The notes under the pieces are model-generated. The model did no database searches. It had not been told where the DNA came from and worked only from the letters and a program-made list of their open reading frames with translations. From NCBI GenBank assembly GCA_002269645.1, contig NIVC01000305.1, forward strand, positions 372,001 through 436,000: a stretch of 64,000 nt of DNA, in the 5' to 3' direction. Position 1 is the stretch's first letter; each line of letters opens with the position of its first letter. The DNA comes from Macrostomum lignano (taxonomy: Eukaryota). The position numbers and the translations under genes were made by a program. Below are positions 16,938 to 47,492 of this stretch, piece by piece.

Positions 16938-17470
16938 GATGTGACAGTGCTCGGAGCGGGCATTGTTGGCTGGTCGGTGGCAGTTCAATTGCTTGACGCT
17001 CTGCCGAACTGTCGTCTCACTGTGGTTGCCGACCAGCTGGATGGCGAGACCGTGTCCTGGGTGGCTGCCGGGTCGTTTCGCATTGAAAATTTTGAGGAAT
17101 TGTGCCCAGACAGGCCTGGACAGGGAAGGAAGTGGGCGGCGGATTCGTTCCAGCATTACCTGGATTTGGCTGTGTCTGGACAGGTACAGGTCAAATATTG
17201 AGCACTAGTGCGAATCCTATTATTAGGTCAAGGATATCATAGTTCACTCTGTTCATTTAACACAGAGAGAAGATAAATTTAAATGCCTGTATGCTCTAAA
17301 AGCCATCAACTTATAGGTTATTATAAGGGTTAAGTTGGTTAGTCAGTTAGTTTTTTAGTTAGTTAGTTAGTCAGTTAGTAAATTAGTTAGTTAGTTTGTT
17401 TGTTTGTTTGTTTGTTTGTTTGTTTGTTTGTTAGTTAGTTAGTTAGTTAGTTAGTTAGTCAGTTAGTAAA

Positions 17471-17506
<36 letters not shown>

Positions 17507-21270: not shown

Positions 21271-24200
21271 ATGGTTTTAGAGAACGTGAACATTCTTGGA
21301 CTGGTATCCGTGCTGCTGTTCTATCTGCTCATTCTAGCTGTGGGCATCTGGGCTGGACGAAGGAGCAAGAACCGCGGCGACAGCGAAGAGGTCATGGTGG
21401 CTGACAGGAGCATCGGGCTGACCGTGGGAATCTTCACGATGACTGGTGAGTCACAGATCTACGAGGGGCGTCCGGAAAGTAGTGTTACTATTACTCGGTG
21501 TGGACGTATGGAAAGTTGCACTTGCATGAGTTTGGTGTCATTTGAAAGCGGCAAGTCTCTTCTTTAAAATGACACCAATTGCAAGAGATTTGAATATGTG
21601 CTTCAAGAGATATGGACCAAGGGGCTTTAGCACTAAGGGGCTTTAGCACCAAGGGGCTTTAGCACCAAGGGGCTTTAGCACCAAGGGGCTTTAGCACCAA
21701 GGGGCGCCAGCACCAAGGGGCGCCAGCACCAAGGGGCGCCAGCACCAAGGGGCGCCAGCACCAAGGGGCGCCAGCACCAAGGGGCGCCAGCACCAAGGGG
21801 CGCCAGCACCAAGGGGCGCCAGCACCAAGGGGCGCCAGCACCAAGGGGCGCCAGCACCAAGGGGCGCCAGCACCAAGGGGCGCCAGCACCAAGGGGCGCC
21901 AGCACCAAGGGGCGCCAGCACCAAGGGGCGCCAGCACCAAGGGGCGCCAGCACCAAGGGGCGCCAGCACCAAGGGGCGCCAGCACCAAGGGGCGCCAGCA
22001 CCAAGGGGCGCCAGCACCAAGGGGCGCCAGCACCAAGGGGCGCCAGCACCAAGGGGCGCCAGCACCAAGGGGCGCCAGCACCAAGGGGCGCCAGCACCAA
22101 GGGGCGCCAGCACCAAGGGGCGCCAGCACCAAGGGGCGCCAGCACCAAGGGGCGCCAGCACCAAGGGGCGCCAGCACCAAGGGGCGCCAGCACCAAGGGG
22201 CGCCAGCACCAAGGGGCGCCAGCACCAAGGGGCGCCAGCACCAAGGGGCGCCACCACCAAGGGGCGCCAGCACCAAGGGGCGCCAGCACCAAGGGGCGCC
22301 AGCACCAAGGGGCGCCAGCACCAAGGGGCGCCAGCACCAAGGGGCGCCACCACCAAGGGGCGCCACCACCAAGGGGCGCCAGCACCAAGGGGCGCCAGCA
22401 CCAAGGGGCGCCAGCACAATTTCCTGTAAAAGTAGCTAGTAGTCCATACATATAAATAAGCCACTGATAATGACAATTGCTCCACAACTTTCCCATTCCA
22501 ACACGCACAGCCACCTGGGTTGGCGGAGGCTACATCAACGGCACGGCAGAGACGGTGTTCAACCCGGCCATCGCGGGCTGGTTGGTGCTCAGGCTCCGTT
22601 TGGCTACGCTTTCAGCCTGGTCTTCGGTTTGTAACAATTCTTGTAGATTTTGTGCGCACTATTTGCACCAACTACTTAAAGTAGACTTTTGCGAGTAAAG
22701 TGCATAATTTATAAATTAATTAGACTAAATAATAAGTATATAACGCGCTTCTTTTAACTGAGTTGCTGGGCCAGCCTCCCAGATCCTCAGTTGCTGGGCC
22801 AGCCCTGTCAGATCCTCAGTTGCTGGGCCAGCCCTGTCAGATCCTCAGTTGCTGGGCCAGCCTCCCAGATCCTCAGTTACTGGGCCAGCCTAGCAGATCC
22901 TCAGTTGCTGGGCCAGCCTCTCAGATCTTCAGTTGCTGGGCCAGCCTCCCAGATCCTCAGTTGCTGGGCCAGCCTAGCAGATCCTCAGTTGCTGGGCCAG
23001 CCTCCCAGATCCTCAGTTGCTGGGCCAACCCTCCCAGATCCTCAGTTGCTGGGCCAGCCTCCCAGATCCTCAGTTGCTGGGCCAGCCTCCCAGATCCTCA
23101 GTTGCTGGGCCAGCCCTGTCAGATCCTCAGTTGCTGGGCCAGCTTCCCAGATCCTCAGCTCAATAATACCAGCCACAATCGCTCTCACACCTAGGCGGGC
23201 TGTTCTTCGCGAACCAGATGCGCAGTAGGGGCTACGTGACCATGCTGGACCCGTTCCAGTACAAGTACGGCGAGAGAATGTGCGGCCTGCTGTTTGTGCC
23301 GGCTCTGCTTGGCGAAGTTTTCTGGTCGGCAGCGATTCTGTCCGCACTGGGTGAGCCTCATTAATAGCGAGAGGTGCAAGGTGCACCTACCTAAATGAGC
23401 ATTGAGTTGTCAGGGCAGCCTACTATGTGAATTTTCAAAGGACACGAGTGCCGGATAGAGAGGCTTCGCGGGCCGTCTGAGGCCCTTGTTTACATTCGAA
23501 CTAGGCAAAAATCATGTGGCGACGCGAACGCTTCCAGAGTCGAAGTAAAACTTAGGCATCTCAATGAAGACATTAAATTTACATCTGACACTCCAGATTG
23601 CGGGTTTTATGCTTGATTCAGATGCAACTTTAACCGTAACAGGAGATTAAAATTCGTTTCTGAATTTATTCAACACGCAGGCGCCACACTCAAAGTGATA
23701 CTAAACATGGACAACACTCACGCTGTGATTGTGTCAGCCTGCATCGCACTCGGCTACACTCTGTTTGGAGGTCTCTACTCGGTGGCTTACACAGACGTTG
23801 TGCAGCTGTTCTGCATATTTATTGGACTGGTAAATGATTGCTTCGGCGTCTGCTTGACGTTTTACCTAAAGGTGTCACCTGGATTTGTCTCCAAGTGTGC
23901 CTGCAAGTGTGATTGCCTAAAGTGCGTCCTGCACGTGATACATGATGTTTAACAGTTTAACCTTCACTGGGCAGCCTAGTTCAGAGTCTTCGATAACATC
24001 TTCCAGTGAATCCTGCTCATTCAGCAAACTCCTGAGAACATTTACAAGTGAGCCAGTGTCGTACACAGACACGCACGCATTCACACGCTCACACAGGGTG
24101 TACAACGGGCCCTAATTGATTTTCTAATCGTCAGGCATGTACACTCTCTGTCAGTGATGGGCACCGCTAAATTTATTTTTAGCGCCGCTAATTAGCGCTG

Positions 24201-26740
24201 TCGCTAACTGATAGAAGAAAAAAGTTGGTGATCGCTAATTAGCGGGCGCCATTTCTACTTTGAGTTTTGCGCAATTAGCGCCGCTAATTTTGGAATGCGC
24301 TAATTAATAAATACATTTAATATAAACTGCCGTTTCACACGTACTTATGCGCTATTGCACATTTTTAACTCACACTTTTTAAATGAATAAGCTATATAAT
24401 AATGCTATTGCTAATAATTTGTTTTTATTATCAATCCTAATAAAAAATCCTCAAGCCGCTGAACTGTCAGAGCAACAGTTATTAGAAAGAGTTCCTAAAC
24501 TACAATGCTGTTTGCCTTGAAAAACGTCAAGGGCCCTTGCTACCGGGGCCATGGTCTTATACTCAAGAAGGAAGGCCTGTCGCTTCGCATCATCGCTTAG
24601 AATATCAACTGAGTTGAACGTTGAATTCTTTGATTAAATTAAATTAATCAACAACTTTTTGCTAACGAATTAAAGGTAGTAAGAAAACTTTTGAAAGTCA
24701 ATGATGAAAACAAGATAAATTGTTGATAACGAAAGCAAAAAAAAGATATTCAAATTTCGTTTCGCATTTCTAAGAAAATTAGAAACATTTTAGAGATTTA
24801 GTATAGGTGGATTTACGTAATATTTAACTTATTACTCAAATATGGTCTCATTTTAAGTATTAAACAGTCATTAACCGTCTAGTTTTATAGCAAAAAAAAT
24901 GAATTTAGCGCAATTAGCGATTTTCAGAAAATAATAGCGGCGCTTTGATAGCGCCCGCTAATTTGAATTTCAATTTAGTGGAATTAGCGGCGCTAACAAA
25001 ACGTTAGCGGCGCATTAGCGGAATTCAAATTTAGCGGCGCTAGTGCCTATCACTGCTCTCTGTGCTTTGTGGGTTGGCCCTCATGGTTGCGAATCACAGG
25101 ACAACCCCCAGAAATATTTTCTGGCACAAGCAAGACCCAAATGAATGTTGCCGCACACGGAATAAAACCAGGGGTACTAGTCAGATGCTTCAATTGAATA
25201 GAATGATACATTGAAAGCTTGCTGATTGAGAGCCAACCTATTCACACTTTATCCTCATCAGTGGCTCTCCATTCCGTTCGCCATGATGAACCCGCTGGTG
25301 CAGCCCATCGCAACCACAGCGCTCACTCGGGTTGTGAACGGCACCGAACAGACCGGCTGGCTGGGCACCGTGGCACCTCAGGATGCCGCTTACTACGCCG
25401 ATAATTTTTTGATGCTCACCTTTGGCGGCATACCCTGGCAGGTGTATTTTCAACGCGTTCTGTCGGCCAAGACGGCTCGAAATGCTCAGTTATTGTCGTA
25501 CATTGCCGCCTTTGGCTGCTTGGTGATGGCTCTGCCATCCGTTCTAATTGGAGCTGTGGCAGCTTCAACAGGTAAGAGAGCTCTCTCTGTGCCGCGCGCT
25601 GATGATTTCTCCACCACATCAAATATCACACTGACCCTGATGCAACGTCTTTTGACGCAGTCATACGCACAGGCACACACTCATACAGGAGTGTACAGCG
25701 GCCCTAACTTTATTTATCTTCGTAAATTGCACTAGCAGACCCGAGCCGAGATTCCAATTTAGTCCGAAATTAACGTGACTGCACTTGGAATCGAGCCTGG
25801 GCCGCTGGCACATGGAGCACCGCACCAGACTACTAGGATACGTCCCCCCAACAAATGCCCCTATTCCATCTTACAAACTGGTAACATGCGCATGGTACTG
25901 TTCATGTGGTATCATTAGCCTTGTCCAACACATTCCCCTGCCCCACTGCCAGACTGGGAGAGCACAGCCTACTTCAACCTGACCCAGTCGACGCCATTTA
26001 GCAAAGACGACATGAAGCTGATTCTGCCGCTAGTCCTGCAGTACCTCTGCCCGCCGGCCGTCGCTTTTGTCGGCTTGGGCGTCGTCTCCGCCGCCGTGAT
26101 GTCCTCAGCGGACAGCTCGATCCTCTCTGCCGCTTCCATGTTCGCTCGCAATGTGATGAAGCCGATTTTTTGGCTGACGGCAACTGACCGCCACGTCATC
26201 TGGTCGATGCGGGCAGCCATTGTAGTTGTTGGCATCATTGCTTGCATCTTAGCCATCCAGATCTCGACAATCTACGGCTTGTGGTTCCTCTGTTCGGATC
26301 TTGTCTATGTAGTCCTGTTCCCGCAGCTGATCTCTGTTATCTACCTAGACTGGTCCAACACGTACGGCAGTTTGGCCGGTTACGTCACCGGGATGTTTCT
26401 GAGAATATCGGCCGGCGAGGCGCTGATCTTCCTGCCCGCTCTGTTCCACTATCCCGGCTTTGTTGACGGCAGCGAATTTTATCAACGATTTCCCGTTAAA
26501 ACATTCAGCATGCTGGCTTCGTTGGCTTCGTCCGCTCTAGTGAGCTACATGACTCACCGACTTTTCACTGAAGGAAAGCTGCCACCTGCTTGGGATGTTT
26601 TTCAATGCGTTGTCCCGAAGGAGACTCGAAGTGTCACCATCGCTGCTGCTGCTGAAGATGATGATGGATTGATGCTGCCACCAATGGTTCAGCCGAAGCC
26701 AGAGGCCAACGAGCCTGAGTTGCGATCTGATATTGATTAA
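21271..26740 (+). CDS. SLC5A7: High-affinity choline transporter (SLC5A7/CHT1/cho-1); 6 exons, with a 1-bp frameshift in exon 2
   Basis: Exons 21271-21445, 22511-22626, 23195-23350, 23681-23829, 25262-25571, 25953-26740. Signature stretches: [94 protein letters not shown]. About 564 aa once the missing base is restored. Confidence 0.95.
21615..22416. repeat. 16-bp GC-rich minisatellite in SLC5A7 intron 1
   Basis: Unit AGCACCAAGGGGCGCC, nearly perfect. Confidence 0.97.
22757..23160. repeat. 28-bp minisatellite in SLC5A7 intron 2 (same family as DNMT3 intron 6)
   Basis: Unit CTCAGTTGCTGGGCCAGCCTCCCAGATC, the reverse complement of the 2533-2903 unit. Confidence 0.95.
24152..25055. mobile_element. 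Non-autonomous hAT element (MITE) in SLC5A7 intron 4
   Basis: TIRs CAGTGATGGGCAC / GTGCCTATCACTG; perfect 8-bp TSD CTCTCTGT (24144-24151 and 25056-25063); many subterminal TAGCGGCGCTA-like motifs. Confidence 0.88.
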
Positions 26741-29559: not shown

Positions 29560-32083
29560 GGCTGCAATGCGGTCTGTTAAATAACATAAGCAGTGTTTTG
29601 ACTTCTTGGTCAGCTGAAGCAGGACCATTTTTGCAGGAAATTTTTAGGATTAGATTTTGAATAGCTCGCCTTCTGGATTGCCGAATTCTCGGAATCTGGC
29701 CTCTTTCAGATACTTTTTAAACAGCTAGGAAGGCAAGTAAACCTGATAAGTAATCTCTTTTACCTACGCCAGGTGTCCCAATGTGACCAACAGTATCATA
29801 GGTATCGTTGTTGGAAGCTTCACGTACTCGGCGATCCACTTTCTAGTTAATTGCGTCACATCTACTGGCTTCGGCTTCGGCTGCCGAAAGCGAACACTCG
29901 TGGCTATTGTGAGTAGCTATTTTTGTTAAACAGCATCTCTTTAACACGTCTCAATGGCAAAGCCATTTAGCACGTCTTCCTGTCAAGGAATTTTTTTCGC
30001 ACATTCACTTTCTGGAGCAACTGTGGCACAAAAGCGTTCTTCGTCTTTCCAAGTGCGCTCAGCAAACCGATGTCAGCGATGTCGGGTAAGAAATTTCGCA
30101 CGGGAAGGTTCCAAAACGTTGTGTACTGTCCAAAGTATAGCTGAACTGCTCTGACCACTTCCAACAGGGGTCGGCATGCACACTCCGACCCGCGGACCAC
30201 ACAAGCGGCCCGCGAAGCCTCTATCCGACCTTCGGGTCCGAGAAACTTCACGGGTAGTGTCTCTGTTAACTCTCTTTTTTATTCTATTCCCTCTCCTCTC
30301 TTTCTTCCTCTCCCTTCTGTCTCCCATTCTCTCCACCCTCTTCTTCCACCTGCTCTATACCCTAATTCTTCCTTCTTTGCCTTTTTTTCCTCTATTCCCT
30401 CTCTTCTCTCTGGCCGGCAGTCATGCGCTAGATTATATACTTGTCCCTAAAGTCAAAACAGTTTGCCGACATCCGACTTAGAGCTTTTTTAATACTCGTA
30501 ATTTCTGCTTATCTACATCATTACTTGAATTTCTTATGACTTTCCAAAACAAATCATTTTCGGCTCTTACAAAAGCAAATAGTAATCCTGACGTCGAAAG
30601 AAGTCGACGACGTACGTTGGATTGTTGCACAAGTAAGCAGTAAAACAGATTGCTAACAAGTCAGATCTCCTGACCCTCAACCGCAGTGGCTGACTCTGGA
30701 CATATTCGTGACAGCTGGGTGGTGTCTGCTATCCTGCCTGTCCTTCGTGCCCCTGTTCGCTCACCTGGCCTACTCCAGTCGATTAAAACGAGGCGTACAT
30801 GACTTGGACCTGAATCATTACATCACCGCGTTGGTGGTAAATCCTAACCTAATAGTTACAATGACAACAGGTGACGAAGCATCCGCCTTGAAGCCGGCTG
30901 TGAGGAAACAACGATTTCAACTTAAAAACCTTATAATAAAAAACCGAATTACATCATATATAAAAGTACGAGAAATCCTTTTCAGTCGTTCTCTACATTT
31001 TATCCAATATTAACGCTATACATTGGAAACTGCGTTGTGACAGCTAGTCTGGTAAACTCCATTAATTTATTGGATTTGACTTGTTATACAACAGCTTATA
31101 GTAGTCCTTTAGCTTCACCGGTTAGCCAGTAGCTTCGCTTAATAGTAGCAAGTAGAGTGTAGTTTCATTAAATTTTAATTCAGTTTTAGCTAAAATAACG
31201 AACAAACAAATTTCGCTGCAGGTACTTCAAGCGAGTTGCCTTGCTGTAAATCTGGTTACAAACCAAATACTTCGTGGTAATCGGCAAGAAAAATCATCCA
31301 ATAATCGACGAGATATACAAAGTCAGCCTGCTGTCACTGATCAATCGAGGCAAGTCGTTGCTATGAATACTACAGGCTGCATCTTGCCAAACTAAATTTG
31401 ATCGATAATAAATACTTAAAACAAATACTTGAATTTACTTCAAACGTATCCCTCCAAAGTATCTTTTTATCACACTTTGTTAATCACAATTTAATAGTGA
31501 TTAGGTGAATAAGATAAACAACCTACTTGAGTCAACAAATATACTCTGAAGTTGTTAAGCCGTTAATATGCGAGAGGTAACATATTTCCAGGCAAAATAA
31601 CATACATGTAACATAATAAGTTAAAATGTCATATAGTTAATTACACAACCGACTCTAAAAATGATAGAGCCAACTCAATTAGAGATAAAAGCTCGTCGAC
31701 AAATACGCACGAAACTAACAAAAGATTATTTACATTAATTAATTTCCAAGGCAAACGCACTGTCGGGGCCACATCAAGTTAGCCAACCTAGTCAAACACA
31801 GGCGCAAATAATCCATCAATTTATGAGTTAGCCAATAGCACTACATGTAAATGGGATTGCCATTCAATTATCGGGTATTTCCTATTCCCCGATAGCAAAT
31901 AACCATGATTGCTGCCCATGAACACTGCTTAGTTTGGACTATATGCAATCATAAAACGCATACCGGATGCAATATTGTCAGCTTCAATACATCCATTGTA
32001 GCATTCAGAGACTACATGTACATATAACAGCATCGCAGATGCGTATTAGTCGAATTAGAAGCATCTAAGTCGAATCTTTCGCG

Positions 32084-33385
32084 ATGGCTGTCGAAAGCAT
32101 GAAGCTACTTGCAATATTGCTTCTGTTCTGTTCGATCCTGGCAACGGAAAGCATCGCCAAGCGGAGAGACTATCAAGCCGAGCTGTTCAAATACTTGAAG
32201 AACAACATTACTGACTACAGTCCGAAACTGCGACCTACGCTCGACCTAGACCAGGATGTGGAAGTACACGTCATCGCCTCGCCAAGAATGATTGTATCCG
32301 TGGACAGCGCCAAGCAGAGCATGACAATAGCTGGCATGTTTTTTGCCAGCTGGTACGAGGAGCGACTGGTCTGGGACCCCCAGCTGTTCGGGAATGTCAC
32401 AATGATGGACTGGGACAGCAACCAGCTCTGGCTCCCGGTCATAATCGTCTACAACGGCATGGGAGACAATCAACTGCTCAGTCCTCAGTTTCCGCCGTAC
32501 ATCACTTCCGTGCAGTCCAATTTGTCAGTGGTATCGACAACCTGGAGACAGGAGTGGGAGTTCTCTTGCGAGTTTAATATGACCCGCTTCCCTCTGGACC
32601 GTCACATCTGCGACATGGAGCTGTTCATGAATGCCCGCGCATTGGACAAAATCGTCCCGAGAAAAGGCTTATTATTGGCAAACTCATCGTTTGAATATAA
32701 TGAAGGCGCAGCTTTTGCTCGTAACAGCGAATGGCGGGTGCTGAACCTCAGCACATTCATACGGTACAACGACTTCAAAATGTTCAAAAGTCAGCCGCCA
32801 GTGAAAATGCCGACCTTTGTGATGCGACTGGAGATTGAGCGAGTGTCTACTTACTACATGCTCAACGTGGTGGCTCCCCTAATGCTGCTCACGCTGCTCC
32901 AGGTGCTCGTCTTCTTCGTGCCCGTCGAGTCTGGAGAGAAGCTGGGCTTCGGCATCACCATCACGCTGAGCTACACGGTGTTCCTGCTGCTACTGGACGG
33001 CCTGCTGCCCAAGTCGCAGTCGATGCCGGCCGTGGCGTCGTTCATCACGGCGGCCATGGTGCTGTCGACGTCGTCTCTGCTGCTGACGTCGGTGTCGATT
33101 CGGTTCCACTTCGCTGCGGAGTCTCAGCCGATGCCGTCGTGTCTCCGGTTCATGTTCGTGAGCTGCCTGGGCCGCGCGATGCTGTGCGGTGAGAGGCGAG
33201 GCGGCAGCAGGACGGCGCCGGAGGGAGACGCCGATGACTCCGTGGTGAGCAAGGCGAGCGACGTCGGTGAAAGGCGCTCGGAGTGGCAGGTCGCAGCGGT
33301 CGCCGTGGAGCGGCTGATGATTTTCTTGGGCTGTCCTGCCGCAGTGGCCATTGTGGTTGCATTTGTCATTGTTCCATCCTGTTAA
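32084..33385 (+). CDS. Intronless Cys-loop ligand-gated ion channel, divergent nAChR-like non-alpha subunit; copy 1 (A-type ectodomain, B-type tail)
   Basis: 433-aa single ORF with signal peptide, Cys-loop CEFNMTRFPLDRHIC, M1-M2 PVESGEKLGFGIT, M3 and M4, and a short M3-M4 loop. No vicinal cysteines. Confidence 0.92.
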   Translation: MAVESMKLLAILLLFCSILATESIAKRRDYQAELFKYLKNNITDYSPKLRPTLDLDQDVEVHVIASPRMIVSVDSAKQSMTIAGMFFASWYEERLVWDPQLFGNVTMMDWDSNQLWLPVIIVYNGMGDNQLLSPQFPPYITSVQSNLSVVSTTWRQEWEFSCEFNMTRFPLDRHICDMELFMNARALDKIVPRKGLLLANSSFEYNEGAAFARNSEWRVLNLSTFIRYNDFKMFKSQPPVKMPTFVMRLEIERVSTYYMLNVVAPLMLLTLLQVLVFFVPVESGEKLGFGITITLSYTVFLLLLDGLLPKSQSMPAVASFITAAMVLSTSSLLLTSVSIRFHFAAESQPMPSCLRFMFVSCLGRAMLCGERRGGSRTAPEGDADDSVVSKASDVGERRSEWQVAAVAVERLMIFLGCPAAVAIVVAFVIVPSC

Positions 33386-33944
33386 TTTTAACTCGGCTAG
33401 ACAAAAAATCGAAGCACAGTGATAGAGCGCTCTGTAGTAATATGAACTTATTAAACGTAATTTAAAAAAGCAGTCTCTCTTGTCTAATAGTTATTCTCTT
33501 TTACGTTCTCTAAGAAATGCCTCGCTGCTGAAGCCTTGGGGTCCAAAATTAAAGGTCACATTTGCTTAAACTATTTACACTAATGGGCAATGCTTAAAAT
33601 ACAAAATCCAACTTTAAAATCGAAGTGGTGTCAATCGTTCTAAATACACAAATTTTATTCTTTTTGTGAATCTTTGTGGACTAATTTCTTTCTTAACCTT
33701 TTCTGCAACAAAGGGCATGATACTCCAAAACTGAGTCTATTTTGTACCTTATGTATGGAAAAGCTTTCACACAGAACTTACGGATTCAGAACGGTGAGTT
33801 GTATATAACTGTCACAACTTGAGACATCGCAAAATCTGAAGCGATCGCTGAGTTGACTTCTGCAACTTTAACTTTTCGACTGCACCTTCGACTGCACCCG
33901 CATACTGCCGTCCAGGGCCATGAAAGGCACAGAGTGAGGACCAA

Positions 33945-34200
33945 GGGTTTATTAGGCTGAGGACCATGTGTTCATTGGGCTGAAGACCATGGGTTCATTG
34001 GGCTGAGGACCACGTGTTCATTGGGCTGAAGACCAAGGGTTCATTGGGCTGAAGACTATGGGTTCATTGGGCTGAGGACCACGTGTTCATTGGGCTGAGG
34101 ACCATGGGTACATTGGGCTGAGGACCACGTGTTCATTGGGCTGAAGACCAAGGGTTCACTGGTTTGAGGACCATGACTTCATGAGAACTGAGGACCAATA
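33945..34200. repeat. 23-bp minisatellite downstream of copy 1; homologues at 44728-45010 and 55468-56035
   Basis: Unit TGAGGACCATGGGTTCATTGGGC. The third array is expanded and shifted to GAGACTGAGGACCATGATTTCAT. Confidence 0.9.
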
Positions 34201-34899
34201 ATGTGGTAGCGTGTGGCGTGTGTCTGGGGTGTTTGCATGGTGCTAGTTTGGTTTGGGTGTGTTATCGAATTATCGATTGTTCGTCCGAAGCTTCTAACGT
34301 TTTCGGCTTTGATAAATCTAAAGACAAAATATGTCAATTAATAAACTTTATCTGACATTTTCCAATATGCGAAATTTCCTCCGCTCAATTGGCAGTGAAA
34401 TTTGATAGCGAAGCTGCTATTCTAGTATGATGCTTCGAATTTGGACGAAGCAATTGCTTCTCTTTCGACACCTCGATTTCGCCTCGAATAGTAAATTAAT
34501 TTCACTAAAATATCAAAGCAGTCACGAACCTATAGAGTAAACACCTGAGCCATTTTTACACAGACATGTATAGATGCATGGACACCTGAGGTATAGGCCG
34601 GTGGGATATTTTCGAATCTCTTTTAGGGTTATTATTGTCATCTGGATCGGTATCTGGCAGTCAAGGTCAACTGATTATAGGCTTTTAGCCTGTTAGTCAG
34701 TTCTTCAAAGCCTGTTAGACAGTCTGTAGAGATCTCTAAAACATAGTATAAGCAGACTACTAGAAGTGGAAAGATAAAATATTTGAAAGACAAATTTTAC
34801 ATGCTACGGTTCATACTCAATTTTTAATAGTAATCACGAAAACAGTAAACGTCTATTCCATTATGCGAAAAACCGGTTCTCAACATCTAATTTTAGAAC

Positions 34900-36610
34900 T
34901 TCCTTTGATATCAATTACCGGAGGAGGGGCACAGAGGAAGGCATTCATGCCTTCAAAGGGAGTAGAGGGTGGAGCGCCTATAGTCATGCGTCAGGCTCTG
35001 CCCTGGATTTTGTAGAGATTGCCGAAATTCCAAAATTGCCGAAAGTGGGCTAGATGACCGCTAGCCCACACGAGGCTGGCGTAACAGATTGAGGGGCGGA
35101 TAATGGCAGTGTAAATCCACCACAGTTTTCTGGGGGTGAGCCCTAGGTGGTGCCCACGGCGCACCTGATCTGAGCCAGGACAGCCAGGGCTTTTTTGGCT
35201 TTAGTTTGAATGTGCGGAGTCCAGTTTAAGCCTGTGGTCCAGAGTGAGGCCCAGGCAGCGGACCTGCTTCTCCATGGAAATATCCTTTCCATAGAGGGCG
35301 AGGGGCTTAATGGTCCAGAGCAGTTTGTTGGTAAACATGACCGCTGTGGTTTTCGACTCTGAGAGTCTAAGGCCACATTGGTTTGCCCAACGCTCCGCTC
35401 GTCCCAGAAAGCCCTGCAGAAGATCTCTGAGGTATCAAACGAGGGACCCTCGCATATGGTGGTCACATTATAGGCATAGCCCACCTTGAGAATGGTGTCA
35501 TGGAGATCACTGCAAAGCAACTTATCCATGCGTCCTTTCTGGACAGGCGCCGTTAGAGAGCTGCTGTTCAGGTGGACCACGACAGTGCGGTTCCGGATCA
35601 TGAACATGATCCACCGAACAAGGGGAGGGTGCGTGGCCCTGGATTCCAGGGGTCTGCAAAAGGCCTCGAAGATGACATTGTCGAAGGCCCCCTCAATCTC
35701 CAGGAAAAGCGAGAGGGCAAAGCCGCTGCCAAGAACGGCCCTCTTCAGGAAGTCAACGATGACATTGAGGGCACTCTCAGTGGACCTGCCCGCGCGGAAG
35801 GCGTGCTGGTTATGCGAGAGAGGGAAGCGCTTCAGCTCGATTGAAAGTAAGCGCCAAAGCACCAGTCTTTCGAGGAGCTTAAGGCAGAAGGAGGTAAGGC
35901 TGATAGGCCTGAAGGCCTTCACCTATTGGTAGTCGCAATATCCAGGCTTGGGGATAAAGACCACCCGGGCCTCTTTCCACGCAACTGGTACATAGCCCAG
36001 CTCCACACAAGCTCGGAGGAGACGACAGAGGAGGTCTAGGAAGCGGTGGTTTTTCACTGCCTCGTGCAAGAACGCTTAGTAGATGCCATCGGGCCCAGGC
36101 GCCTTGAACGGGTTGAAGGACCTTGCCGCTCTAGTAATGCGGTCTTTGCTGATCATAGACTTTGCTTGGCCTTGCCCTTCCACGGTGGGGTCAGGCGGGC
36201 CCTGCTGAGTCGGAGATTTAGGGAAGCTCTCTGTGACCGAGCCATCAGGTTTCTTCACAACAGATAGTTTAGAAAAACGGTCGTTCGTGAGTGCCTTTAC
36301 CACGTGGGCTACGGGGCGAGAGCCCTCAAGCCCTTCGCAATATTGGCGCCACTTGGCCCTTCTGACTTGGCCCTTAAACTCGTGGATAGCACGGGTATAG
36401 GCCTCTCTATCAGATGGGTCTTTGGTTTTCAACGCTCGTCTTTGGAGGGTCCTGGCTCGGCGCCGAAGGGCTCTGGGTTTCACCAGGGAGCAGATTTCTT
36501 GCCTTTGAAGGCCTTAAGAGGGCAGGCTGCCTCATAGGCAGTGGTGATCGCCCCGTCCAGGGGGGAGGCGTGATCATCCACAACCCGGCAGTCAGAGAGG
36601 TCACTGGGGA
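34900..36610 (-). mobile_element. Decayed non-LTR retrotransposon RT fragment (LOA/R1-like, inferred)
   Basis: Frameshifted RT-region motifs: FKAPGPDGI, FRPISLTSFCLKLLERL, QHAFRAGRST, LEIEGAFDNV, and [17 protein letters not shown]. Confidence 0.85.
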
Positions 36611-36654
36611 CTGCTAGATCGGAACCCAACCATTCGATGGATGGAGTTGCCCTA

Positions 36655-37850
36655 GCTCCAGAGGCTTATTCTCTGGCGGCTGCTTTCATGCGAGCTGACA
36701 GCAATGCCCCTCAGCAATAATCAGCACGCCTTCCGTACCGAGAGAACGACTGACAGCGCCCTGCATGCGATAGTCGAAAAGATTGAACGGGCGGTACTGG
36801 GTGACGGTTACGCCCTGGCTCTTTTTCTCGACATTGTTGGCGCCTTCGACAACGTTATCTTTAAAGCGTTTCAGAGGGCCCTTCAAAACCGCAAAGCTCA
36901 CGCTACCCTCATACGGTGGATCATGTACATGCTCTCTAACCGTACGGTCACTGCCCAACTTCTCGGGCAAACTGCCTCCACCAGAGTCTGTAAGGGTGGA
37001 CCCCAAGGTGGAGTCCTCAGCCCGACGCTCTGGTATCTGGTCATGGACGCTCTTCTGGGTGACTCCCGACCTGATCCAGTTTTCAAAGTCGGGTATGCTG
37101 ACGACGTATTTGCCATTGTGGCAGGGCCGTCCCCCAGCACGCTCAGGGATCTGATGCAGAGCTTTATCCGCAAAGCAGAATCCTGGGCCAATGACAACGG
37201 TCTGGAACTCTCTGAGCCCAAAACCGTTGCCAATATGTTCACCAGCAGAATACGCTGGAACATACGACCTCTGCAGTTATAAGGCAGAGATATTGCCTTC
37301 GCGCACCAGACCAGATGTCTCGGGATCATAATTGACCACCGGCTCAACTGGTCCTTCCACGTGAAAGCAAAAGCCAAGCGTGCCTCAGCCATCCTGGCCC
37401 AGCTCCGACGAGCACTTGGCACTTCTTGGGGTCTTTCCCCAAAGCGACTTTGGTAGATCTACACTTCCGTAGTTAGACCTGCCATTACGTACGCCTCGGT
37501 TGTCTGGGTTAGCGCTACCCAGGTCAAAAGTCATGCAGATTTGCTCAACACGATCCAGGGCAGAGCGTGTAGGCTTATCTGCAACGCCACCAGGTCCACG
37601 CCCTTTGCCGGCATGGGGGCCTTCCTTAATCTACCGCTTCTCGACCTCTTCGTCAGGGGTGAGGCGGCTAGAACGACGCGGCGTTTACTTGATGCCGGCG
37701 TCAAATTCCTTTGCATGAGGGCACCTGCTAAGCGGAACCTCGTCCCGCATAGCGACCTGTGCCTCAACATTCTTAACGAGTGTCAGGCCAATCGCGTCTT
37801 CACCGATGGCATTGCCTCAACGCTCAACATATTGCTAAAAACTTTGCTTT
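36655..37850 (+). mobile_element. Second non-LTR retrotransposon RT fragment, related but distinct family, head-to-head with the previous one
   Basis: QHAFRTERTT, LDIVGAFDNV, GGPQGGVLSP, GYADD and WGLSPKRLW.IYTSVVRP, with in-frame stops. Confidence 0.88.
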
Positions 37851-38321
37851 CCTGACCCTCAACCGCAGTGGCTGACTCTGGACATATTCGTCACAGCTGG
37901 CTGGTCCCTGCTATCCTGCCTGTCCTTCGTGCCCCTGTTCGCTCACGTGGCCTACTCCAGTCGACTAAAGCGAGGTATACTGGACTTGGACCTGAATCAT
38001 TACGTCACCACGCTGGTGGTAAATCCTAATCTAATAGTTACCATGACAACAGGTGACAAAGCATCCGCCTTTGAGCCAGCTGTGAGGAAACAACGATTTC
38101 AATTTATAAATCTTATAATCGAAAACCGAATTAAATCATATATAAAAGTACGAGTAATCCTTTTCAGTCGTTCTCTACATTTTATCCAATATTAACGCTG
38201 TACATTGGAAACTGCGTTGTGACAGCTAGTCTGGTAAACTCCTTTAATTTATTGGATTTGACTTGTTATACAACAGCTTTTAGCCCTTTAGCTTCACTGA
38301 TTAGCCAGTAGATTCGCTTAA

Positions 38322-38855
38322 CAGTAGGAATGCCACGCCATTTTTCCGCCCGTCGAACTACCAAGGGGAAGGGGATTCCCCCCTAACAAGTGTTTTTGCT
38401 GCGCCCGAACGGAGCAACGCAGGCACACGAAATTCAAGAACACGGGCTAACCTTTGTTATGCAACTTCTCAAACAAGAATCAAGTGGCCAGCCCTCCGGA
38501 CCGTCGAGATATTCGACGATTCTGCCAGAAAGTCGGATTTTAGCCATAAGCGATAGTGTATTCAGTACACCCCTGTACGCCAATTAGCACTGCGCCTTAG
38601 TGCAGCCTTTTCAAGCCTCCAAATTTCATCAGCACGTCGATCACACGCGGCTGCTTCAGCTCTGACTTCTTTAGTCACTGGCCTTCACCCAGGCGGAGCT
38701 TCTGGACCTTCAACAGGTGGCACCAGGTGAGTTTGAGAAGTTGCACAACAAAAAGTTAGCCCGTGCTCTTGAATTTCGTGTGCCTGCGTTGCTCCGTTCG
38801 GGCGCATTAAAGAAATTGTCAGAGGGGGGTAAATTCCCCCTTGGTAGTTCTACTG
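38322..38855. mobile_element. MITE with ~120-bp internal inverted repeats, inserted at a TTAA (or TA) target
   Basis: Ends CAGTAG...CTACTG flanked by TTAA on both sides. Arms 38356-38474 and 38731-38850 are reverse complements. The homologous empty site TTCGCTTAATAGTAG is at ~31135-31149. Confidence 0.88.
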
Positions 38856-39788
38856 TTAATAGTAGCAAGTAGAGTGTAGTCTCATTAAATTTTAATTCAG
38901 TTTTAGCTAAGCAACGACCAAACAATTTTCGCAGAGTACTTCAAGCGAGTTGCCTTGCTGTAAATCTGTTTACAAACCAAATACTTCGTGTTGATCGGCA
39001 AGAAAAATCATCCAATAATCGACGAGATAAACAAAATCAACCTGCTGTCACTGAATAATCGAGGCAAGTCGTTGCTATGGATACAACAGAATGCATCTTA
39101 GGACAGGATGCATATTTAGAACAAATTACTTGAATCGACTTCAAATTTATCACTGCAAAGTAATTTTTTATCAAACTTTGGTAATCACGATTTATAGTAC
39201 CGCATAAATAGCCTACTTGAGTCAACAAATATACTCTGAAGTTTTTAAGCCGTTTATATGCGAGAGGAAACATATTTCGAGGTAAAATAACATAACAGAA
39301 TAAATTACAATGTCATATAGTTAATTACACAACCGACTCTAAAAATGATAGAGCCAAGTCAATTAGACATGAAAGCTCGTTGAAAAATACGCACGAAACT
39401 AATAAAAAGATTATTTACATTAATTAATTTCCAAGGCAAACGCACTGTCAGGACAAATCAACCTACGAGTAATCAAACACAGACGCAAATGATCCATCAA
39501 TTTATGAGTTAGCCAATAGCACTAAATGGGATGGCGATTCAATTATTCAATTATTCAATTATTCAATTATTCAATTATTCAAACGGGTATTTGCTATGCC
39601 CCGATAGCAAATAACCACGATTGCTTCCCATGAACACTGCTTAGTTTGGACTATATGCAATCATAAAACGCATACCGGATGCAATATTGTCTGCTTCTAT
39701 GCATCCATGTAGCATCCAGAGATTACAAATACCGGCATCGAAGCAGTGTATTAGTCGAATTAGAGGCATCTAAGTCGAATCTTTCGCG

Positions 39789-41117
39789 ATGGCTGTCGAA
39801 GGGATGAAGTTGCTTGCAATATTGCTTCTGTTCTGTTCGATCCTGGCAAAGGAATGCCTCGCCAAGCGGAGAGACTATCAAGCCGAGCTGTTCAAATACT
39901 TGAAGAACAACATTACTGACTACAGTCCGAAACTGCGACCTACGCTCGACCCAGACCAGGAGGTAGAAGTACACGTCATCGCCTCACCAGGAATGATTGT
40001 ATCCGTGGACAGTGCCAAGCAGAGCATGACAATAGCTGGTATGTTTTTTGCCAGCTGGTACGAGGAGCGACTGGTCTGGGACCCCCGGCTTTTCGGAAAT
40101 GTCACCGCGATGGACTGGGACGGCAACCAGCTCTGGTTCCCGGTCATATTTGTCTACAACGGCATGGGAGACAATCAACTACTCAGTCCTCAGTTTCCGC
40201 CGTACATCACTTCCGTGCAGTCCAATTTGTCAGTGGTATCGACAACCTGGAGACAGGAGTGGGAGTTCTCTTGCGAGTTTAATATGACCCGCTTCCCTCT
40301 GGACCGTCACATCTGCGACATGGAGCTGTTCATGAATTCCCGCGAATCGGACAAAATTGTCCTAAGAAAAGGCTTATTATTGGCAAACTCATCCTTTGAA
40401 TACAATGAAGGCGTGGCTTTTGCTCGTAACAGCGAATGGCGGGTGCTGAACCTCAGCACATTCATACGGTACAACGACTTCAAAATGTTCAAAAATCTGC
40501 CGCCAGTGAAAATGCCGAACTTCGTGATGCGACTGGAGATTGAGCGGGTGTCCACTTACTACATGCTCAACGTGGTGACTCCCCTAATGCTGCTCACGCT
40601 GCTCCAGGTGCTCGTCTTCTTCGTGCCCGTCGAGTCTGGAGAGAAGCTGGGCTTCGGCATCACCATCATGCTGAGCTACACGGTGTTCCTGCTGCTGCTG
40701 GACGGCCTGCTGCCCAAGTCGCAGTCGATGCCGGCCGTGGCGTCGTTCATCACGGCGGCCATGGTGCTGTCGACGTCGTCTCTGCTGCTGACGTCGGTGT
40801 CGATTCGGTTCCACTTCGCTGCGGAGTCTCAGCCGATGCCGTCGTGTCTCCGGGTCGTGTTCGTGAGCTGCCTGGGCCGCGTGATGCTGTGCGGTGAGCG
40901 GCGAGGCGGCAGCAGGACGGCACCGGAGGGAGACCTCGATGATTCTGCTGTGAACGAACCGAGCCATGACGATAAGAGGACCGGAGAGACGTCCGGAGAG
41001 CCGAGGCGCTCGGAGTGGCAGGTTGCAGAGGTCGCCGTGGAGCGGCTGCTGATCCTCCTAGGCTGTCCGGTCACTTTGGCCATCACGTTTTGTTTCCTTA
41101 TTTTTCCGTTTCTTTGA
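39789..41117 (+). CDS. Intronless Cys-loop ligand-gated ion channel, divergent nAChR-like; copy 2 (A-type)
   Basis: 442-aa ORF with the same architecture as copy 1 but a distinct M3-M4 loop and M4 (DDSAVNEPSHDDKRTGETSGEPRRSEWQVAEVAVERLL). Confidence 0.92.
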   Translation: MAVEGMKLLAILLLFCSILAKECLAKRRDYQAELFKYLKNNITDYSPKLRPTLDPDQEVEVHVIASPGMIVSVDSAKQSMTIAGMFFASWYEERLVWDPRLFGNVTAMDWDGNQLWFPVIFVYNGMGDNQLLSPQFPPYITSVQSNLSVVSTTWRQEWEFSCEFNMTRFPLDRHICDMELFMNSRESDKIVLRKGLLLANSSFEYNEGVAFARNSEWRVLNLSTFIRYNDFKMFKNLPPVKMPNFVMRLEIERVSTYYMLNVVTPLMLLTLLQVLVFFVPVESGEKLGFGITIMLSYTVFLLLLDGLLPKSQSMPAVASFITAAMVLSTSSLLLTSVSIRFHFAAESQPMPSCLRVVFVSCLGRVMLCGERRGGSRTAPEGDLDDSAVNEPSHDDKRTGETSGEPRRSEWQVAEVAVERLLILLGCPVTLAITFCFLIFPFL

Positions 41118-41579
41118 AAAAACATTCGGTGGCACCTTCACGGAGATGGGTTTTCTGATGGGTTAAAAATTCTCGTGTCTGACGAGAGTTTCGATATCTA
41201 AGCACCAAATTAACTTTGAAGATGATACGAAAACATTTTAATAGTGTAATAAAGTCGGTTACTAATATATAGTTGCACTGAGTGAGGTGAAGAGTAAGTA
41301 TCACGCTTAAACGTCATTAGTAATTTTTTCGGCGAACTGAATGTATAGATGTATACGGACACTGTACTAAAAAATTATGATTACTCTTTTCTAGGTCAAG
41401 TTTTTCTTTGGTAAGACCCTCTTGGCACAGCGCAAAAAGCTTAAAAAGATCAGAATAAACAACTTTTCTATGCATTGCCGCTATCCAATAAGATTCTTTT
41501 AAGTTTTCGATTAAAGCTTGTCAAAAAATGCATGCTGCTTCAGGTGTTATTTATAATATAAAATAGTACAATCATATAA

Positions 41580-41870
41580 TGATAGATAACACCTGCCCTA
41601 ATGGGCAGATTTGCAACCGACAGCTCAGCCGCAGCTATTGCGTGTCGCATCTGAAGGCTGCGTACGGCTGTTCAGTCCGAGGACTGGGGGGGGGGTTCAT
41701 ACACACCCTCAATTACCCCCAGCTAATGCTGATACAAATTTTACAGCTGGGTGAACCGAAGCATGTCAGTGTCTTGCTCGAGGACACAAATTGTTCCAAG
41801 AGGGTCGATAATCGAACCCCCGACCTTTCAGTCGTGAGTCCGACGCTCTCACCACTAGGCTAGATTTAAC
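41580..41870 (-). mobile_element. tRNA-derived SINE with a Nin/Deu-like central domain
   Basis: Minus strand has A-box TAGCCTAGTGG and B-box GGTTCGATT, followed by TGTGTCCTCGAGCAAGACACT and CACCCAGCTGTAAAATTTGTA. Confidence 0.6.
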
Positions 41871-42872
41871 TACATCCAATAATAAGATAGTTCAGATGAC
41901 GCAAGTGCAGGAAGGTTCCATGGGAATCGGCCAGAATTGCAAGTCTGAAAACGGCGCAGTATTATTTGATGCAAACATTTTGAAGGGACTGCGTGCGGAA
42001 AACTTATTATAAATCACGCATGGGTTTTATCATATATTATTTACCTTTTCATCCATATGATTTTTAACTAAATAACGCGTGTTAATGTGTCGGCTGCTTC
42101 TTGTGTGTCGAAGGAATTGAAGAAAAATGTGTCCACATTATGCTTTAAGCGACAAACCTCACATGTGAAAAATACTTGCTTGCTGTTATTCATTCTAAGT
42201 TACGCGTGCTAAAGCGCGTCTGCTGCCCCGTGAGGATCAAGGGGAAAACTGAGCACTACCGTGACTTATTGATATGTAATGTTTTAGGGTCTTTGACCTT
42301 AACTATGTATATAAGCTAGGACACAATGGATCAATGGTACAAGCTAAAATTAAATTGGGCATTAGTTATTATTATACGCTATCGTATCTCAGATGAATCA
42401 CATGTAAGTTCTTAGTTTGCGGCCGATTAGAAACTTATAGCTACATTTAGTCATTCTACATTAGATGTCCACACGCTCCTCGAGCGAGCTTTATCCAGAG
42501 GCAAAGATCAGCAGAGGAGCTGCGTAGAATCCGCAAATATCAGTCATACCTGGCAAAGTCAATTTAGAAAATGAATCGCAAATAATACTAATTTGCTGAT
42601 GAGACGAAGGTCACACAATGAGATATACCTGGTTCAGTCCTGCATCAGATTAATTACGGGATACTCAGTGACTGCAATTCACAGATGCTCGTAGCAACTA
42701 AATAGGCAGACTATGCAAACTTCAGAATTTGATAGCCTACTGCAGTGTCAACATGTAAAACGCATTTACGCTTGTATAGCTTAAAGGCTCGGGTTCAACA
42801 GGATCTGGGGATTTTATTGTCCAAGCTTAGCACGCTGCTCATCATTGAGACGGCTAACTCAACTACATCCAC

Positions 42873-47445: not shown

Positions 47446-47492
47446 AGACTGCTAGATCGGAACCCAACCATTCGATGGATGGAGTTGCCCTA

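Follow-up and report, generated by a model that had tools for sequence, protein, structure and literature searches.

A hybrid A-head/B-tail receptor gene and a near-identical transmembrane block in a tandem nAChR-like cluster of Macrostomum lignano

The receptor cluster and its shared transmembrane block

The window analysed here is a stretch of 64,000 nucleotides from Macrostomum lignano (contig NIVC01000305.1, positions 372,001 to 436,000 of the forward strand). Within at most 27 kb of it lie six intronless genes, each a single open reading frame and all on one strand, which form a tandem array of nAChR-like pentameric ligand-gated channels. They fall into three ectodomain types: A (copy 1, A2 and A4), B (B3 and B5) and C (C6). 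The genes adjoining the cluster, which belong to the DAO and SSF families, are split into exons, unlike the receptors. The members of the array are as follows.

32084 to 33385, forward strand: copy 1 (c1), an intact hybrid Cys-loop receptor gene of 433 codons with signal peptide, Cys-loop CEFNMTRFPLDRHIC and M1 to M4, described from its reading frame, Pfam and an alignment with nAChR alpha
39789 to 41117, forward strand: A2, an intact A-type gene of 442 amino acids, with an A-type tail that carries a 27-bp insert
42873 to 44179, forward strand: B3, a B-type gene and second hybrid, with B5-type head and block and the tail and flank of the copy 1 unit
50619 to 51946, forward strand: A4, an A-type gene in which a 1-bp deletion (A2 CDS position 816) shifts the frame
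53603 to 54910, forward strand: B5, an intact B-type gene of 435 amino acids, the only one with a B tail and flank independent of unit 1
57323 to 58642, forward strand: C6, an intact gene of the third type, 439 amino acids, which has the transmembrane block alone in common with the others (93-95%)

Pfam places Neur_chan_LBD (PF02931) and Neur_chan_memb (PF02932) above the curated cut-offs in copy 1, A2 and B3, and the closest PDB matches are nAChR subunits (E = 4e-32). A homologue search with the copy 1 protein returned two metaclust proteins alone, at 45-46% identity, and metagenome contigs scanned by protein pattern and 40-mer gave no match. An exact-protein look-up of c1, A2, B5, C6, P0001 and P0002 had zero matches; as the other five are missing too, the failure to find copy 1 there is uninformative.

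The Cys-loop of copy 1, CEFNMTRFPLDRHIC, has 13 residues between its two cysteines and matches the Cys-loop in the nAChR alpha alignment. M1 to M3 can be aligned residue by residue with a solved nAChR alpha chain, and M4 was called by inspection of the hydrophobic C-terminal stretch alone. The cytoplasmic loop between M3 and M4 is unusually short (about 60-70 residues). In M2 the segment SGEKLGFGITI(T/M)LSYTVF is aligned with SGEKMTLSISVLLSLTVF, which puts Glu at -1' and Leu at 9', as in cation-selective nAChR/5-HT3-like channels. The residues with which alpha subunits bind acetylcholine are missing from copy 1 in the same alignment, namely the vicinal Cys pair and the tyrosines of loop C (nAChR YSCCPDTPY aligned with FKSQPPVKM) and the Trp of loop B (TWTYD aligned with ARALD). 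With these residues lost, the term nAChR-like refers to fold and pore and not to the agonist. By its sequence, copy 1 is expected to belong to a cation channel and to bind something other than a cholinergic ligand.

Since copy 1 and the A genes separated, the 749 bp that code for the ectodomain have taken up no indels, against about 20 gap events in the non-coding DNA beside them, and dN/dS is about 0.3; the copy 1 head has thus been under constraint. The first-pass annotation had reported Thr for Met at M2 8', and we find this change (ACG for ATG, site 32964) to be private to copy 1. The private changes of copy 1 in the otherwise invariant block number five non-synonymous to three synonymous, which is compatible with relaxed constraint.

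The genes of the cluster differ strongly in the parts on either side of this block. Amino acid identity of the ectodomains is 52% between A and C6, 48% between A and B and 43% between B and C6, while the tails of A and B are 60% identical to each other and 53% and 40% identical to that of C6. The block itself has these positions.

32845 to 33216, forward strand: shared transmembrane block in copy 1; A and B are 97.8% identical here, and 55% and 72% identical on its two sides
40550 to 40921 (A2), 43639 to 44010 (B3), about 51380 to 51750 (A4), 54370 to 54741 (B5) and about 58096 to 58467 (C6): equivalent blocks

Its borders are sharp, with A-B identity going from 0.55 to 0.978 and back to 0.72. 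The transmembrane DNA had been called identical between the types, which is too strong: of its 372 bp, 8 are different in A and B, and no perfectly matching stretch exceeds 149 bp. The A-B comparison gives a dS of 0.05 for the block, more than 2.5 (saturation) for the ectodomain and about 0.75 for the tail; against C6 the block has a dS of 0.13-0.16. The block is also richer in GC at third codon positions (0.86-0.90) than the ectodomain (0.56-0.67) and the other flanking coding part (0.65-0.68). A low-dS block with sharp borders inside otherwise saturated paralogues, together with the GC enrichment at silent sites, points to interlocus gene conversion as the process that probably homogenises M1 to M3. 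Purifying selection alone was rejected as the cause, because the synonymous sites of the block are identical as well.

C6 was considered as an outgroup with which to polarise the recombinant and was rejected. Its flanks are unrelated to those of all other copies, its tail cannot be assigned clearly to either A or B, and because it exchanges block sequence with the other copies it polarises single sites only weakly.

Two mosaic genes and a younger duplication

The unit that contains copy 1 is itself composed of parts with different relationships, which can be laid out along the window.

30644 to 33146, forward strand: A-derived part of unit 1 (upstream segment U, promoter region, ectodomain and M1 to M3 up to the last A-specific site), from BLAST, identity profile and site table
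33147 to 33216, forward strand: 70-bp crossover interval, past M3 and at the beginning of the M3-M4 loop, where A equals B; maximum chi-square 547
33217 to 34197, forward strand: B-derived part of unit 1 (end of the loop, M4, stop and 3' flank up to a 23-bp satellite)
34198 to 37825, forward strand: remaining flank of unit 1 (F1/F2), with two LINE-type reverse-transcriptase fragments (Pfam RVT_1), about 98.5% identical to 45013 to 48663

In self-BLAST and identity profiles, the 5' flank and head of copy 1 align with the A units over 30644 to 33259. Substitution identity to them is about 0.89-0.91 in non-coding DNA (JC 0.09-0.12) and 0.95-0.96 in the ectodomain, where dS is 0.10-0.12 and the comparison with B is saturated. 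From about 33200 to 37826 copy 1 instead follows the tail and flank of B3 (43994 to 48664) at about 0.985-0.99. Against B5 the coding tail is 97% identical, with a dS of 0 (about 0.75 against A), and the 3' flank is 83% identical (17% different, JC 0.19). The homology with this independent B5 flank extends for some 0.8 kb, and both flanks reach the 23-bp satellite.

The informative sites place the switch precisely. All 12 A-versus-B sites of the shared block between 32833 and 33146 are A-like in copy 1, and from 33217 on every such site is B-like, including the absence of A's 27-bp insert. For the breakpoint test we chose A2 and B5 as parents, as they are independent of unit 1. To the left, 397 sites are A-like and 23 B-like, to the right 33 are A-like and 304 B-like, and the maximum chi-square of 547, which lies between 33146 and 33217, was reached by none of 2000 permutations. 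The results support copy 1 as a genuine mosaic of A head and B tail, which changes over once, within the shared block. The first-pass annotation had described it as A-type in promoter and ectodomain and B-type in M3-M4 loop, M4 and 3' flank, and identity profiles, informative sites and chi-square all confirm this description. It had also put the crossover within the pore block; the switch is inside the block, but after M3 at the start of the loop and not in the pore-lining M2. Likewise a B-type tail does sit on an A head, but the swapped tail amounts to merely some 53 codons, covering the end of the M3-M4 loop and M4.

In the protein the crossover interval corresponds to about amino acids 355-378, where the cytoplasmic loop begins; in the DNA it forms the 3' edge of the shared block. 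A and B are 100% identical in it and copy 1 differs from both at four bases (33149T, 33152A, 33177C and 33194A). Three of the four are shared with C6 alone, so the history of exchange in the block is more complex than one crossover.

The second mosaic, B3, belongs to a younger event. About 33.2-44.0 kb of the window matches 44.0-54.8 kb at an unbroken identity of some 99%, which makes a tandem duplication of 10.8 kb whose copies differ by 0.7-2%; A2 and A4 differ by 0.7%. B3 is its junction gene, B5-like up to 43988 and like the copy 1 unit from 44196.

43989 to 44196, forward strand: duplication junction interval in B3 (loop end, M4 and stop); chi-square 124.6, 0 of 2000 permutations, with patchy informative sites

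The junction lies at the same end of the block as the copy 1 breakpoint and marks a second, independent recombinant. With a B5-like head and a copy-1-like tail, B3 received its tail and flank from the copy 1 unit and not the reverse, and B3, which the earlier description had used as the reference B tail, is not an independent one. It starts with GTG and has lost 1 bp within the signal peptide, and is thus likely to be a pseudogene.

Units 2 and 3 share an insertion that unit 1 does not have.

38322 to 38855, unstranded: MITE of 534 bp with TTAA target-site duplication and long subterminal inverted repeats, in units 2 and 3 (second copy at 49160 to 49694)

The element had been estimated at about 540 bp; at its measured 534 bp it has TTAA target-site duplications, and the corresponding position in unit 1 is a clean, empty TTAA (31139 to 31142). 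The clean site means that unit 1 never had the MITE common to units 2 and 3, and the order of events was therefore an old split, the MITE insertion and then the 10.8-kb duplication. At its left end (30644) the cluster abuts satellite DNA, and the homology of unit 1 sets in within a LINE ORF, 30 bp short of its stop. The idea that segment U is a dispersed LINE 3' UTR found no support, as the window contains no further copies.

Origin of copy 1

Copy 1 is probably an ordinary Lepore-type product with a history older and more tangled than a single recent crossover. Among A, B and copy 1, only copy 1 can be expressed as a one-event mosaic of the other two, and BLAST within the window found no A tail, spacer or B head in unit 1. 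The interpretation given by the first-pass annotation, an unequal crossover in a parent resembling unit 2, is partly supported. What unit 1 lacks is indeed exactly A tail, spacer and B head, and homologous recombination in the shared DNA is the most economical way to lose them, but the parent does not hold. The copy 1 head is 5-11% from A2 and A4 and its tail and flank only some 1-1.5% from B3, so units 2 and 3 are not supported as the parental type, and a single deletion from a unit-2-like parent does not account for both values. The lengths cited in favour are accurate: the unit ends given by BLAST (30644, 37826 and 48664) make the units 7182 and 10838 bp long, and 3062 bp separate the A and B stops (44179-41117). 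That the difference equals this spacing plus the MITE follows from the architecture, however, and is no independent evidence.

A recent single crossover in such a parent, joining an A2-like gene to a B3-like one, would fit this length difference and the roughly 99% identity of tail and flank with B3 over 4.6 kb, and we still hold it to be very improbable. The head and 5' flank are 5-11% from A2 and A4 although these two differ by just 0.7%, the MITE site of unit 1 is empty, and the 99% tract runs on as the 10.8-kb tandem period with B3 as junction gene. The unequal divergence of head and tail contradicts this account, which could be rescued only if all of the 5' half of unit 1 had later been replaced from an unseen donor. 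We think it rather probable instead, if far from assured, that copy 1 is a Lepore-type hybrid from an older sister unit, formed by recombination in a conversion-homogenised pore module. Gene conversion between loci would keep the M1-M3 module near-identical while the ectodomains saturate, and the resulting block of some 370 bp in direct orientation could act as a site of homologous recombination. In an older sister unit of the order U-A-spacer-B-flank, the unit's own A and B blocks would have recombined, by unequal exchange or an intrachromatid loop-out. A crossover in 33147 to 33216 would remove the A tail, spacer and B head and leave an uninterrupted reading frame, A in its ectodomain and B in its tail, under the control of the A-type upstream region. 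A second unequal exchange, in which the gene at the copy 1 position recombined with B5 close to where the block ends on its 3' side, probably duplicated 10.8 kb and produced B3, with the head of B5 and the tail and flank of unit 1; it could have come later or possibly earlier. This second exchange would be why the copy 1 tail appears about 99% B3-like. Deletion as the route, and the order of the steps, we infer; the event is probably an old one, and the hybrid may be expressed and may have a function.

The distances to unit 3 leave a further complication, since a simple duplication of the whole unit followed by deletion predicts equal values at both ends, and those found (JC 0.09-0.12 in the 5' non-coding DNA and 0.19 in the 3' flank) count against it. 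The gap could have arisen if parts of the 5' half were converted afterwards, as one identity window there falls to 0.84 and copy 1 and A4 share a tract at 32145 to 32335, or it could reflect separate events.

Several other histories have to be weighed against an older sister unit with deletion. Copy 1 might be the junction gene of an older duplication, arising when a B gene to the left exchanged unequally with the A gene of the next unit to the right, or through a template switch of the FoSTeS/MMBIR type between blocks during partial copying. B3 demonstrates that such junction genes form in this array, and different ages of head (about 0.10) and tail (0.19 against B5) would be allowed. Under this model a B gene, together with flank, satellite and F1/F2 DNA, should lie directly to the left of 30644; in the window upstream of that position there is no F1/F2 match and no receptor match, and we see only a small chance that it is right. 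We also regard an assembly artefact as unlikely, either as a jump between near-identical blocks that skipped about 3.1 kb or as two haplotypes of the 10.8-kb segment placed in tandem. It is true that the breakpoints lie exactly in repeated DNA, and the 0.7-2% divergence between the 10.8-kb copies is within the range of heterozygosity of many invertebrates. However, the repeat measures just about 370-560 bp, and multi-kilobase satellite arrays in the window were assembled through, which argues for long reads able to span the block. The copy 1 block moreover has private bases on either side of the switch and is thus a separate physical copy, not a consensus sequence blended from A2 and B3; misplaced haplotypes would call B3 and the duplication into question, but not the chimeric nature of copy 1.

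It could also be asked whether the copy 1 arrangement is ancestral and A, with a new tail, and B, with a new head, are the recombinants. Copy 1 has the C6 state at most informative sites of 32833 to 33271, and the C6 loop is without A's 27-bp insert. Such C6-like states are equally predicted by the deletion model, though, and an ancestral copy 1 needs two events against one. Copy 1 carries A-derived states on the left (32836 and 32882) and B-derived states on the right (33241, 33264, 33271, 33328 and others), and C6 does not itself have an A head plus a B tail, since the tails of A and B are closer to each other than either is to C6 and the three ectodomains are 43-52% identical. We take this history to be highly unlikely. 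Hardly credible is gene conversion without crossover, in which the tail and 3' flank of an A-type gene were overwritten by a long B tract. Conversion is clearly active in the cluster, and the coding tails of copy 1 and B5 have a dS of 0 while their flanks are 17% different, but a conversion tract must also end in homologous sequence and does not displace the DNA beyond it, and in unit 1 neither an A-type 3' flank nor a spacer nor a further B gene comes after the tract. Retroposition or reverse-transcriptase template switching as the origin of unit 1 was rejected, as there is no poly-A or target-site duplication at the unit end and the homology ends in the 23-bp satellite.

Comparison with known systems

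Hybrids of tandem paralogues made by unequal crossover include those of the red/green opsin, CYP11B1/B2 and glycophorin genes. In haemoglobin Lepore, a delta-beta fusion gene arose by unequal crossover between tandem paralogues (PMC9422200). Copy 1 resembles it in taking its promoter and 5' part from the upstream paralogue and its 3' part, in the same orientation, from the downstream one, with one in-frame breakpoint inside a near-identity tract and the DNA between the parents lost. It differs in that the tract is a short module, probably maintained by conversion, within saturated paralogues and not an overall similarity of the genes, in that the parental chromosome and the reciprocal "anti-Lepore" product (B head, A tail) are not seen, and in its probable age, with 5-19% divergence in place of a recent allele.

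Domain-restricted gene conversion is known from the tandem receptor genes TLR1/TLR6 (PMC2077338) and from clustered protocadherins (PMC1852091, PMC2764143), where, as here, the membrane or signalling part is homogenised and the ligand-facing ectodomain diverges. The present case concerns a pentameric channel, has a more extreme contrast (dS 0.05 against saturation) over three types, and has a block that was at least twice the site of a crossover altering gene structure. One could go further and suggest that the pore module is a maintained "constant cassette", a built-in recombination site that re-pairs ectodomains, tails, promoters and flanks. If true, it would be a DNA-level counterpart of the variable-exon/constant-exon clusters of protocadherins or UGT1. 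Two independent hybrids within 12 kb and a block-only exchange with a third gene type fit the suggestion, to which we give a low probability.

Intronless tandem expansions of nAChR-like genes have been described in lophotrochozoans, as have the chemotactile receptors of cephalopods, and retroposition and tandem duplication are invoked for these families (PMC6896357, PMC11526382). Gene conversion, recombination and chimeric genes go unmentioned in PMC6896357. The cluster shares with these families the intronless, nAChR-like genes in tandem, the divergent ligand-binding domains and the loss of canonical acetylcholine-binding residues, but the closest homologue retrieved for copy 1 is just 46% identical. 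Within the same superfamily, human CHRFAM7A is a partial CHRNA7 duplication fused to FAM7A that arose from segmental duplication and recombination. It is a hybrid gene like copy 1, and the fusion structure is among the PDB entries retrieved, but it joins receptor exons to an unrelated gene and has a truncated ligand-binding domain, whereas copy 1 is a full-length, in-frame hybrid of two paralogues.

The mechanism is a textbook one and its general significance is modest. The cluster offers a sequence-resolved case in which a tandem nAChR-like family changes beyond simple duplication: a channel core probably homogenised by conversion, beside ectodomains that run free, would double as a crossover site and yield hybrid genes and changes in copy number. 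For annotation it is a warning that paralogue trees built from the transmembrane domain will mislead in such families, and that apparently new receptors may be mosaics. Copy 1 can also be regarded as a natural domain-swap construct, with A ectodomain and pore, B loop end and M4 and the private Thr at M2 8', that can be compared with its parents. As a minor observation that bears on a comparison with A2 and B5, copy 1 is without the MITE and carries one ATTCAATT unit against about five.

The receptor cluster and its setting

Six Cys-loop receptor genes, each a single open reading frame, lie on the forward strand between 32 and 58.7 kb; the letters A, B and C denote the ectodomain type. They are listed here with the genes 5' of the cluster.

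16638-19249 and 25226-26740, forward: exon-like ORFs of a DAO-family FAD oxidoreductase and a sodium:solute symporter (SSF family)
32084-33385, forward: copy 1 (c1), 433 aa, intact
39789-41117, forward: A2, 442 aa, intact
42873-44179, forward: B3, probably disabled; GTG replaces ATG, and the signal peptide has a 1-bp deletion
50619-51946, forward: A4, frameshifted by a 1-bp deletion in M1 (A2 CDS position 816, window about 51433)
53603-54910, forward: B5, 435 aa, intact
57323-58642, forward: C6, 439 aa, intact

Following a recent duplication, one member of each pair (A4 and B3) appears disabled, with A2 and B5 still intact. The deletion in A4 could alternatively be a sequencing error. The genome is eukaryotic, and beside the oxidoreductase and symporter genes, which are broken into exons, the intronless receptor genes stand out. 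The symporter looks choline-transporter-like by eye. Much of the DNA beside the cluster (1-23158, 59636-63324) is short-period satellites, with more than 12 different arrays of periods 4-69 bp and at most 2.4 kb each; a 28-bp array at 2571-2904 reappears inverted at 22761-23158.

The Cys-loop is common to all six genes in the six-way alignment, and the Pfam ligand-binding and transmembrane domains are present in c1, A2 and B3, the three genes scanned. Among solved structures, nicotinic receptor subunits come closest (E = 4e-32). In an alignment to an nAChR alpha chain, Glu at M2 -1' and Leu at 9' are conserved, and the Cys pair and tyrosines of loop C and the Trp of loop B are missing. From these residues we predict nAChR-like cation-channel subunits, a label that says nothing on the agonist. 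A homologous-protein search, and protein-pattern and 40-mer scans of metagenome contigs, gave no close relatives.

In its setting the family is like the lophotrochozoan expansions of intronless nAChR genes in tandem (PMC6896357) and the cephalopod chemotactile receptors (PMC11526382). Gene conversion, recombination and chimeric genes are unmentioned in PMC6896357, and in a full-text literature search on Cys-loop and gene conversion there were just five matches, and neither term occurred in the title of any of them. A documented case in the Cys-loop superfamily therefore has some value.

The switch in copy 1

The first-pass annotation had read c1 as an A-type sensor on a B-type tail, and the comparisons bear this out. 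In self-BLAST and identity profiles unit 1, the first of three array repeats (starts 30644, 37826 and 48664), aligns with the A units from 30644 to about 33259, and with the B3 tail and flank from 32822 onward. In the six-way alignment c1 has the A state at 12 of 12 A-versus-B informative sites in the block from 32833 to 33146 and the B state at all informative sites from 33217 on; a 27-bp insert that marks A tails is missing. With A2 and B5 as independent parents, the best breakpoint falls between 33146 and 33217 (chi-square 547, reached by 0 of 2000 permutations), with 397 A-like against 23 B-like sites to its left and 33 against 304 to its right. This interval lies 3' of M3, where the cytoplasmic loop begins, and outside M2; the annotation had set the crossover in 'identical' transmembrane DNA, for which we measure 97.8%.

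An independent comparison groups the head of c1 with A and its coding tail (dS of 0) with B5. The 3' flank groups with B5 over about 0.8 kb, ending in a common 23-bp satellite, and no alignment of the A tail and flank to this c1/B5-type flank was possible. Thr at M2 8' of c1 (ACG vs ATG, site 32964) had been noted correctly, as had the lengths of units 1 and 2 (7182 and 10838 bp) and the stop-to-stop spacing (3062 bp). Unit 1 is without exactly the A tail, the spacer and the B head.

The shared pore block and a second hybrid

All copies share the M1-M3 transmembrane DNA (372 bp; 32845-33216 in c1). By Nei-Gojobori, the A-B dS goes from saturation (above 2.5) in the ectodomain to 0.05 in the block and back up to about 0.75 in the tail; comparisons with C6 give 0.13-0.16 for the block and a saturated ectodomain. 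The borders are sharp, A-B identity being 0.55 in the 150 bp before, 0.978 inside and 0.72 after, and GC3 is 0.86-0.90 in the block vs 0.56-0.68 in adjoining coding parts. C6 has only this block in common with the others, and its flanks match nothing else. Protein-level selection is ruled out as the cause of the identity, because silent sites are homogenised too. The standard explanation would be interlocus gene conversion, which is usually GC-biased, comparable to the domain-restricted homogenisation of TLR1/TLR6 (PMC2077338) and of protocadherin clusters (PMC1852091, PMC2764143). Long antisense ORFs over the transmembrane blocks are most simply a non-genic by-product of sense-strand GC3 near 0.9:

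40584-40967, reverse
43839-44156, reverse
54404-54940, reverse
58046-58716, reverse

Identity between B3 and B5 is 98-100% as far as about 44069-44195 and falls to about 0.84 beyond it, in the 3' flank. The approximately 99% similarity in the array is therefore a single unbroken tandem period of 10.8 kb (about 33200-44000 vs 44000-54800). B3 sits at the duplication junction: all 22 sites up to 43988 have the B5 state, those at 44129-44195 are mixed, and from 44196 on 131 of 134 sites have the unit 1 state (chi-square 124.6, reached by 0 of 2000 permutations). B3 (42873-44229) is therefore a younger hybrid, whose head and block are B5-type and whose tail and 4.5-kb flank came from the copy 1 unit. 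The match of about 99% to B3, which the annotation had taken as its reference B tail, is uninformative on the origin of c1, since B3 was the recipient. The conversion-maintained pore module would have been a crossover site at least twice, giving the intact hybrid c1 and the apparently dead hybrid B3. We consider this array-level picture the more informative result.

Origin of copy 1

Divergence tiers (JC-corrected)
Units 2 and 3, over the upstream segment, A and spacer: 0.007
Units 2 and 3, over spacer and B head: 0.020
Flanks of units 1 and 2: 0.010-0.015
5' non-coding DNA of c1 and of the A units: 0.09-0.12
3' flanks of c1 and B5: 0.19

A single event suffices to derive c1 as a mosaic of A and B, whereas neither A nor B can be derived in this way from the other two. 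Most economically, it is the product of a Lepore-type deletion, by homologous recombination between tandem paralogues, in an older sister unit; the mechanism is the one behind haemoglobin Lepore (PMC9422200) and further hybrid genes of tandem families. By a crossover within 70 bp over which A and B do not differ, the deletion would have removed the tail of A, the spacer and the head of B. The mosaic and its missing segments in the first-pass history stand, but the origin as written there conflicts with the divergence tiers. The deletion may have come before or after the 10.8-kb duplication.

Were c1 the junction gene of a duplication, a B gene and flank should lie left of 30644, and neither is present. 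An ancestral c1 arrangement would take two events, and C6 lends it no support. Conversion of the tail without crossover would have kept A-type DNA downstream, where there is none. Misassembly is less likely: the repeat is short, long satellites in the window were assembled, and the c1 block has private bases.

Some details fit the Lepore-type deletion less neatly. The head of c1 (about 0.10; ectodomain dS to A 0.10-0.12) and its 3' flank (0.19) are of unequal age, which may reflect continued exchange of the 5' half with the A genes; one 250-bp window of that half is just 0.84 identical in the identity profile. In a 190-bp ectodomain tract (32145-32335 in c1, 39850-40040 in A2, 50680-50870 in A4) A4 equals c1 and A2 differs at 8 sites, although elsewhere A2 and A4 hardly differ. 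A short conversion between c1 and one of the A copies would account for this, as would the copying of a foreign tract into A2. The crossover interval holds four c1-private bases, three in common with C6: at 33149, 33177 and 33194 c1 agrees with C6 only, 25 kb away, and A and B have the alternative base. Either c1 has kept ancestral states here, or a C-type block was the source of a mini-conversion.

The repeats of the array are as follows.

38322-38855: MITE, 534 bp, with TTAA duplications (piggyBac-like target)
49160-49694: second MITE copy
31139-31142: clean empty TTAA site in unit 1
33935-34197, 44727-45012, 55472-56058: 23-bp satellite (TGAGGACCATGGGTTCATTGGGC), 11, 12 and about 26 units, 3' of every B-type tail
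35143-35922 (reverse), 36704-37282 (forward): degraded LINE-type reverse-transcriptase fragments, head-to-head between receptor units
46085-46720 and 47542-48096: copies of these fragments
39537-39582, 50375-50412, 31868-31875: (ATTCAATT)n microsatellite, about 210 bp 5' of A-type start codons

The MITE had been recognised correctly. It has ends CAGTAG...CTACTG and subterminal inverted repeats of about 130 bp, and lies about 930 bp 5' of the A genes. It is common to units 2 and 3 and was never carried by unit 1, so unit 1 split off, the MITE then inserted and the 10.8-kb duplication followed. The last ORF of the forward-strand LINE ends at 37855, about 30 bp into the segment matching unit 1 from 30644. 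The microsatellite runs to 5.75 units in A2 and 4.75 in A4, against just one in c1, a possible promoter difference.
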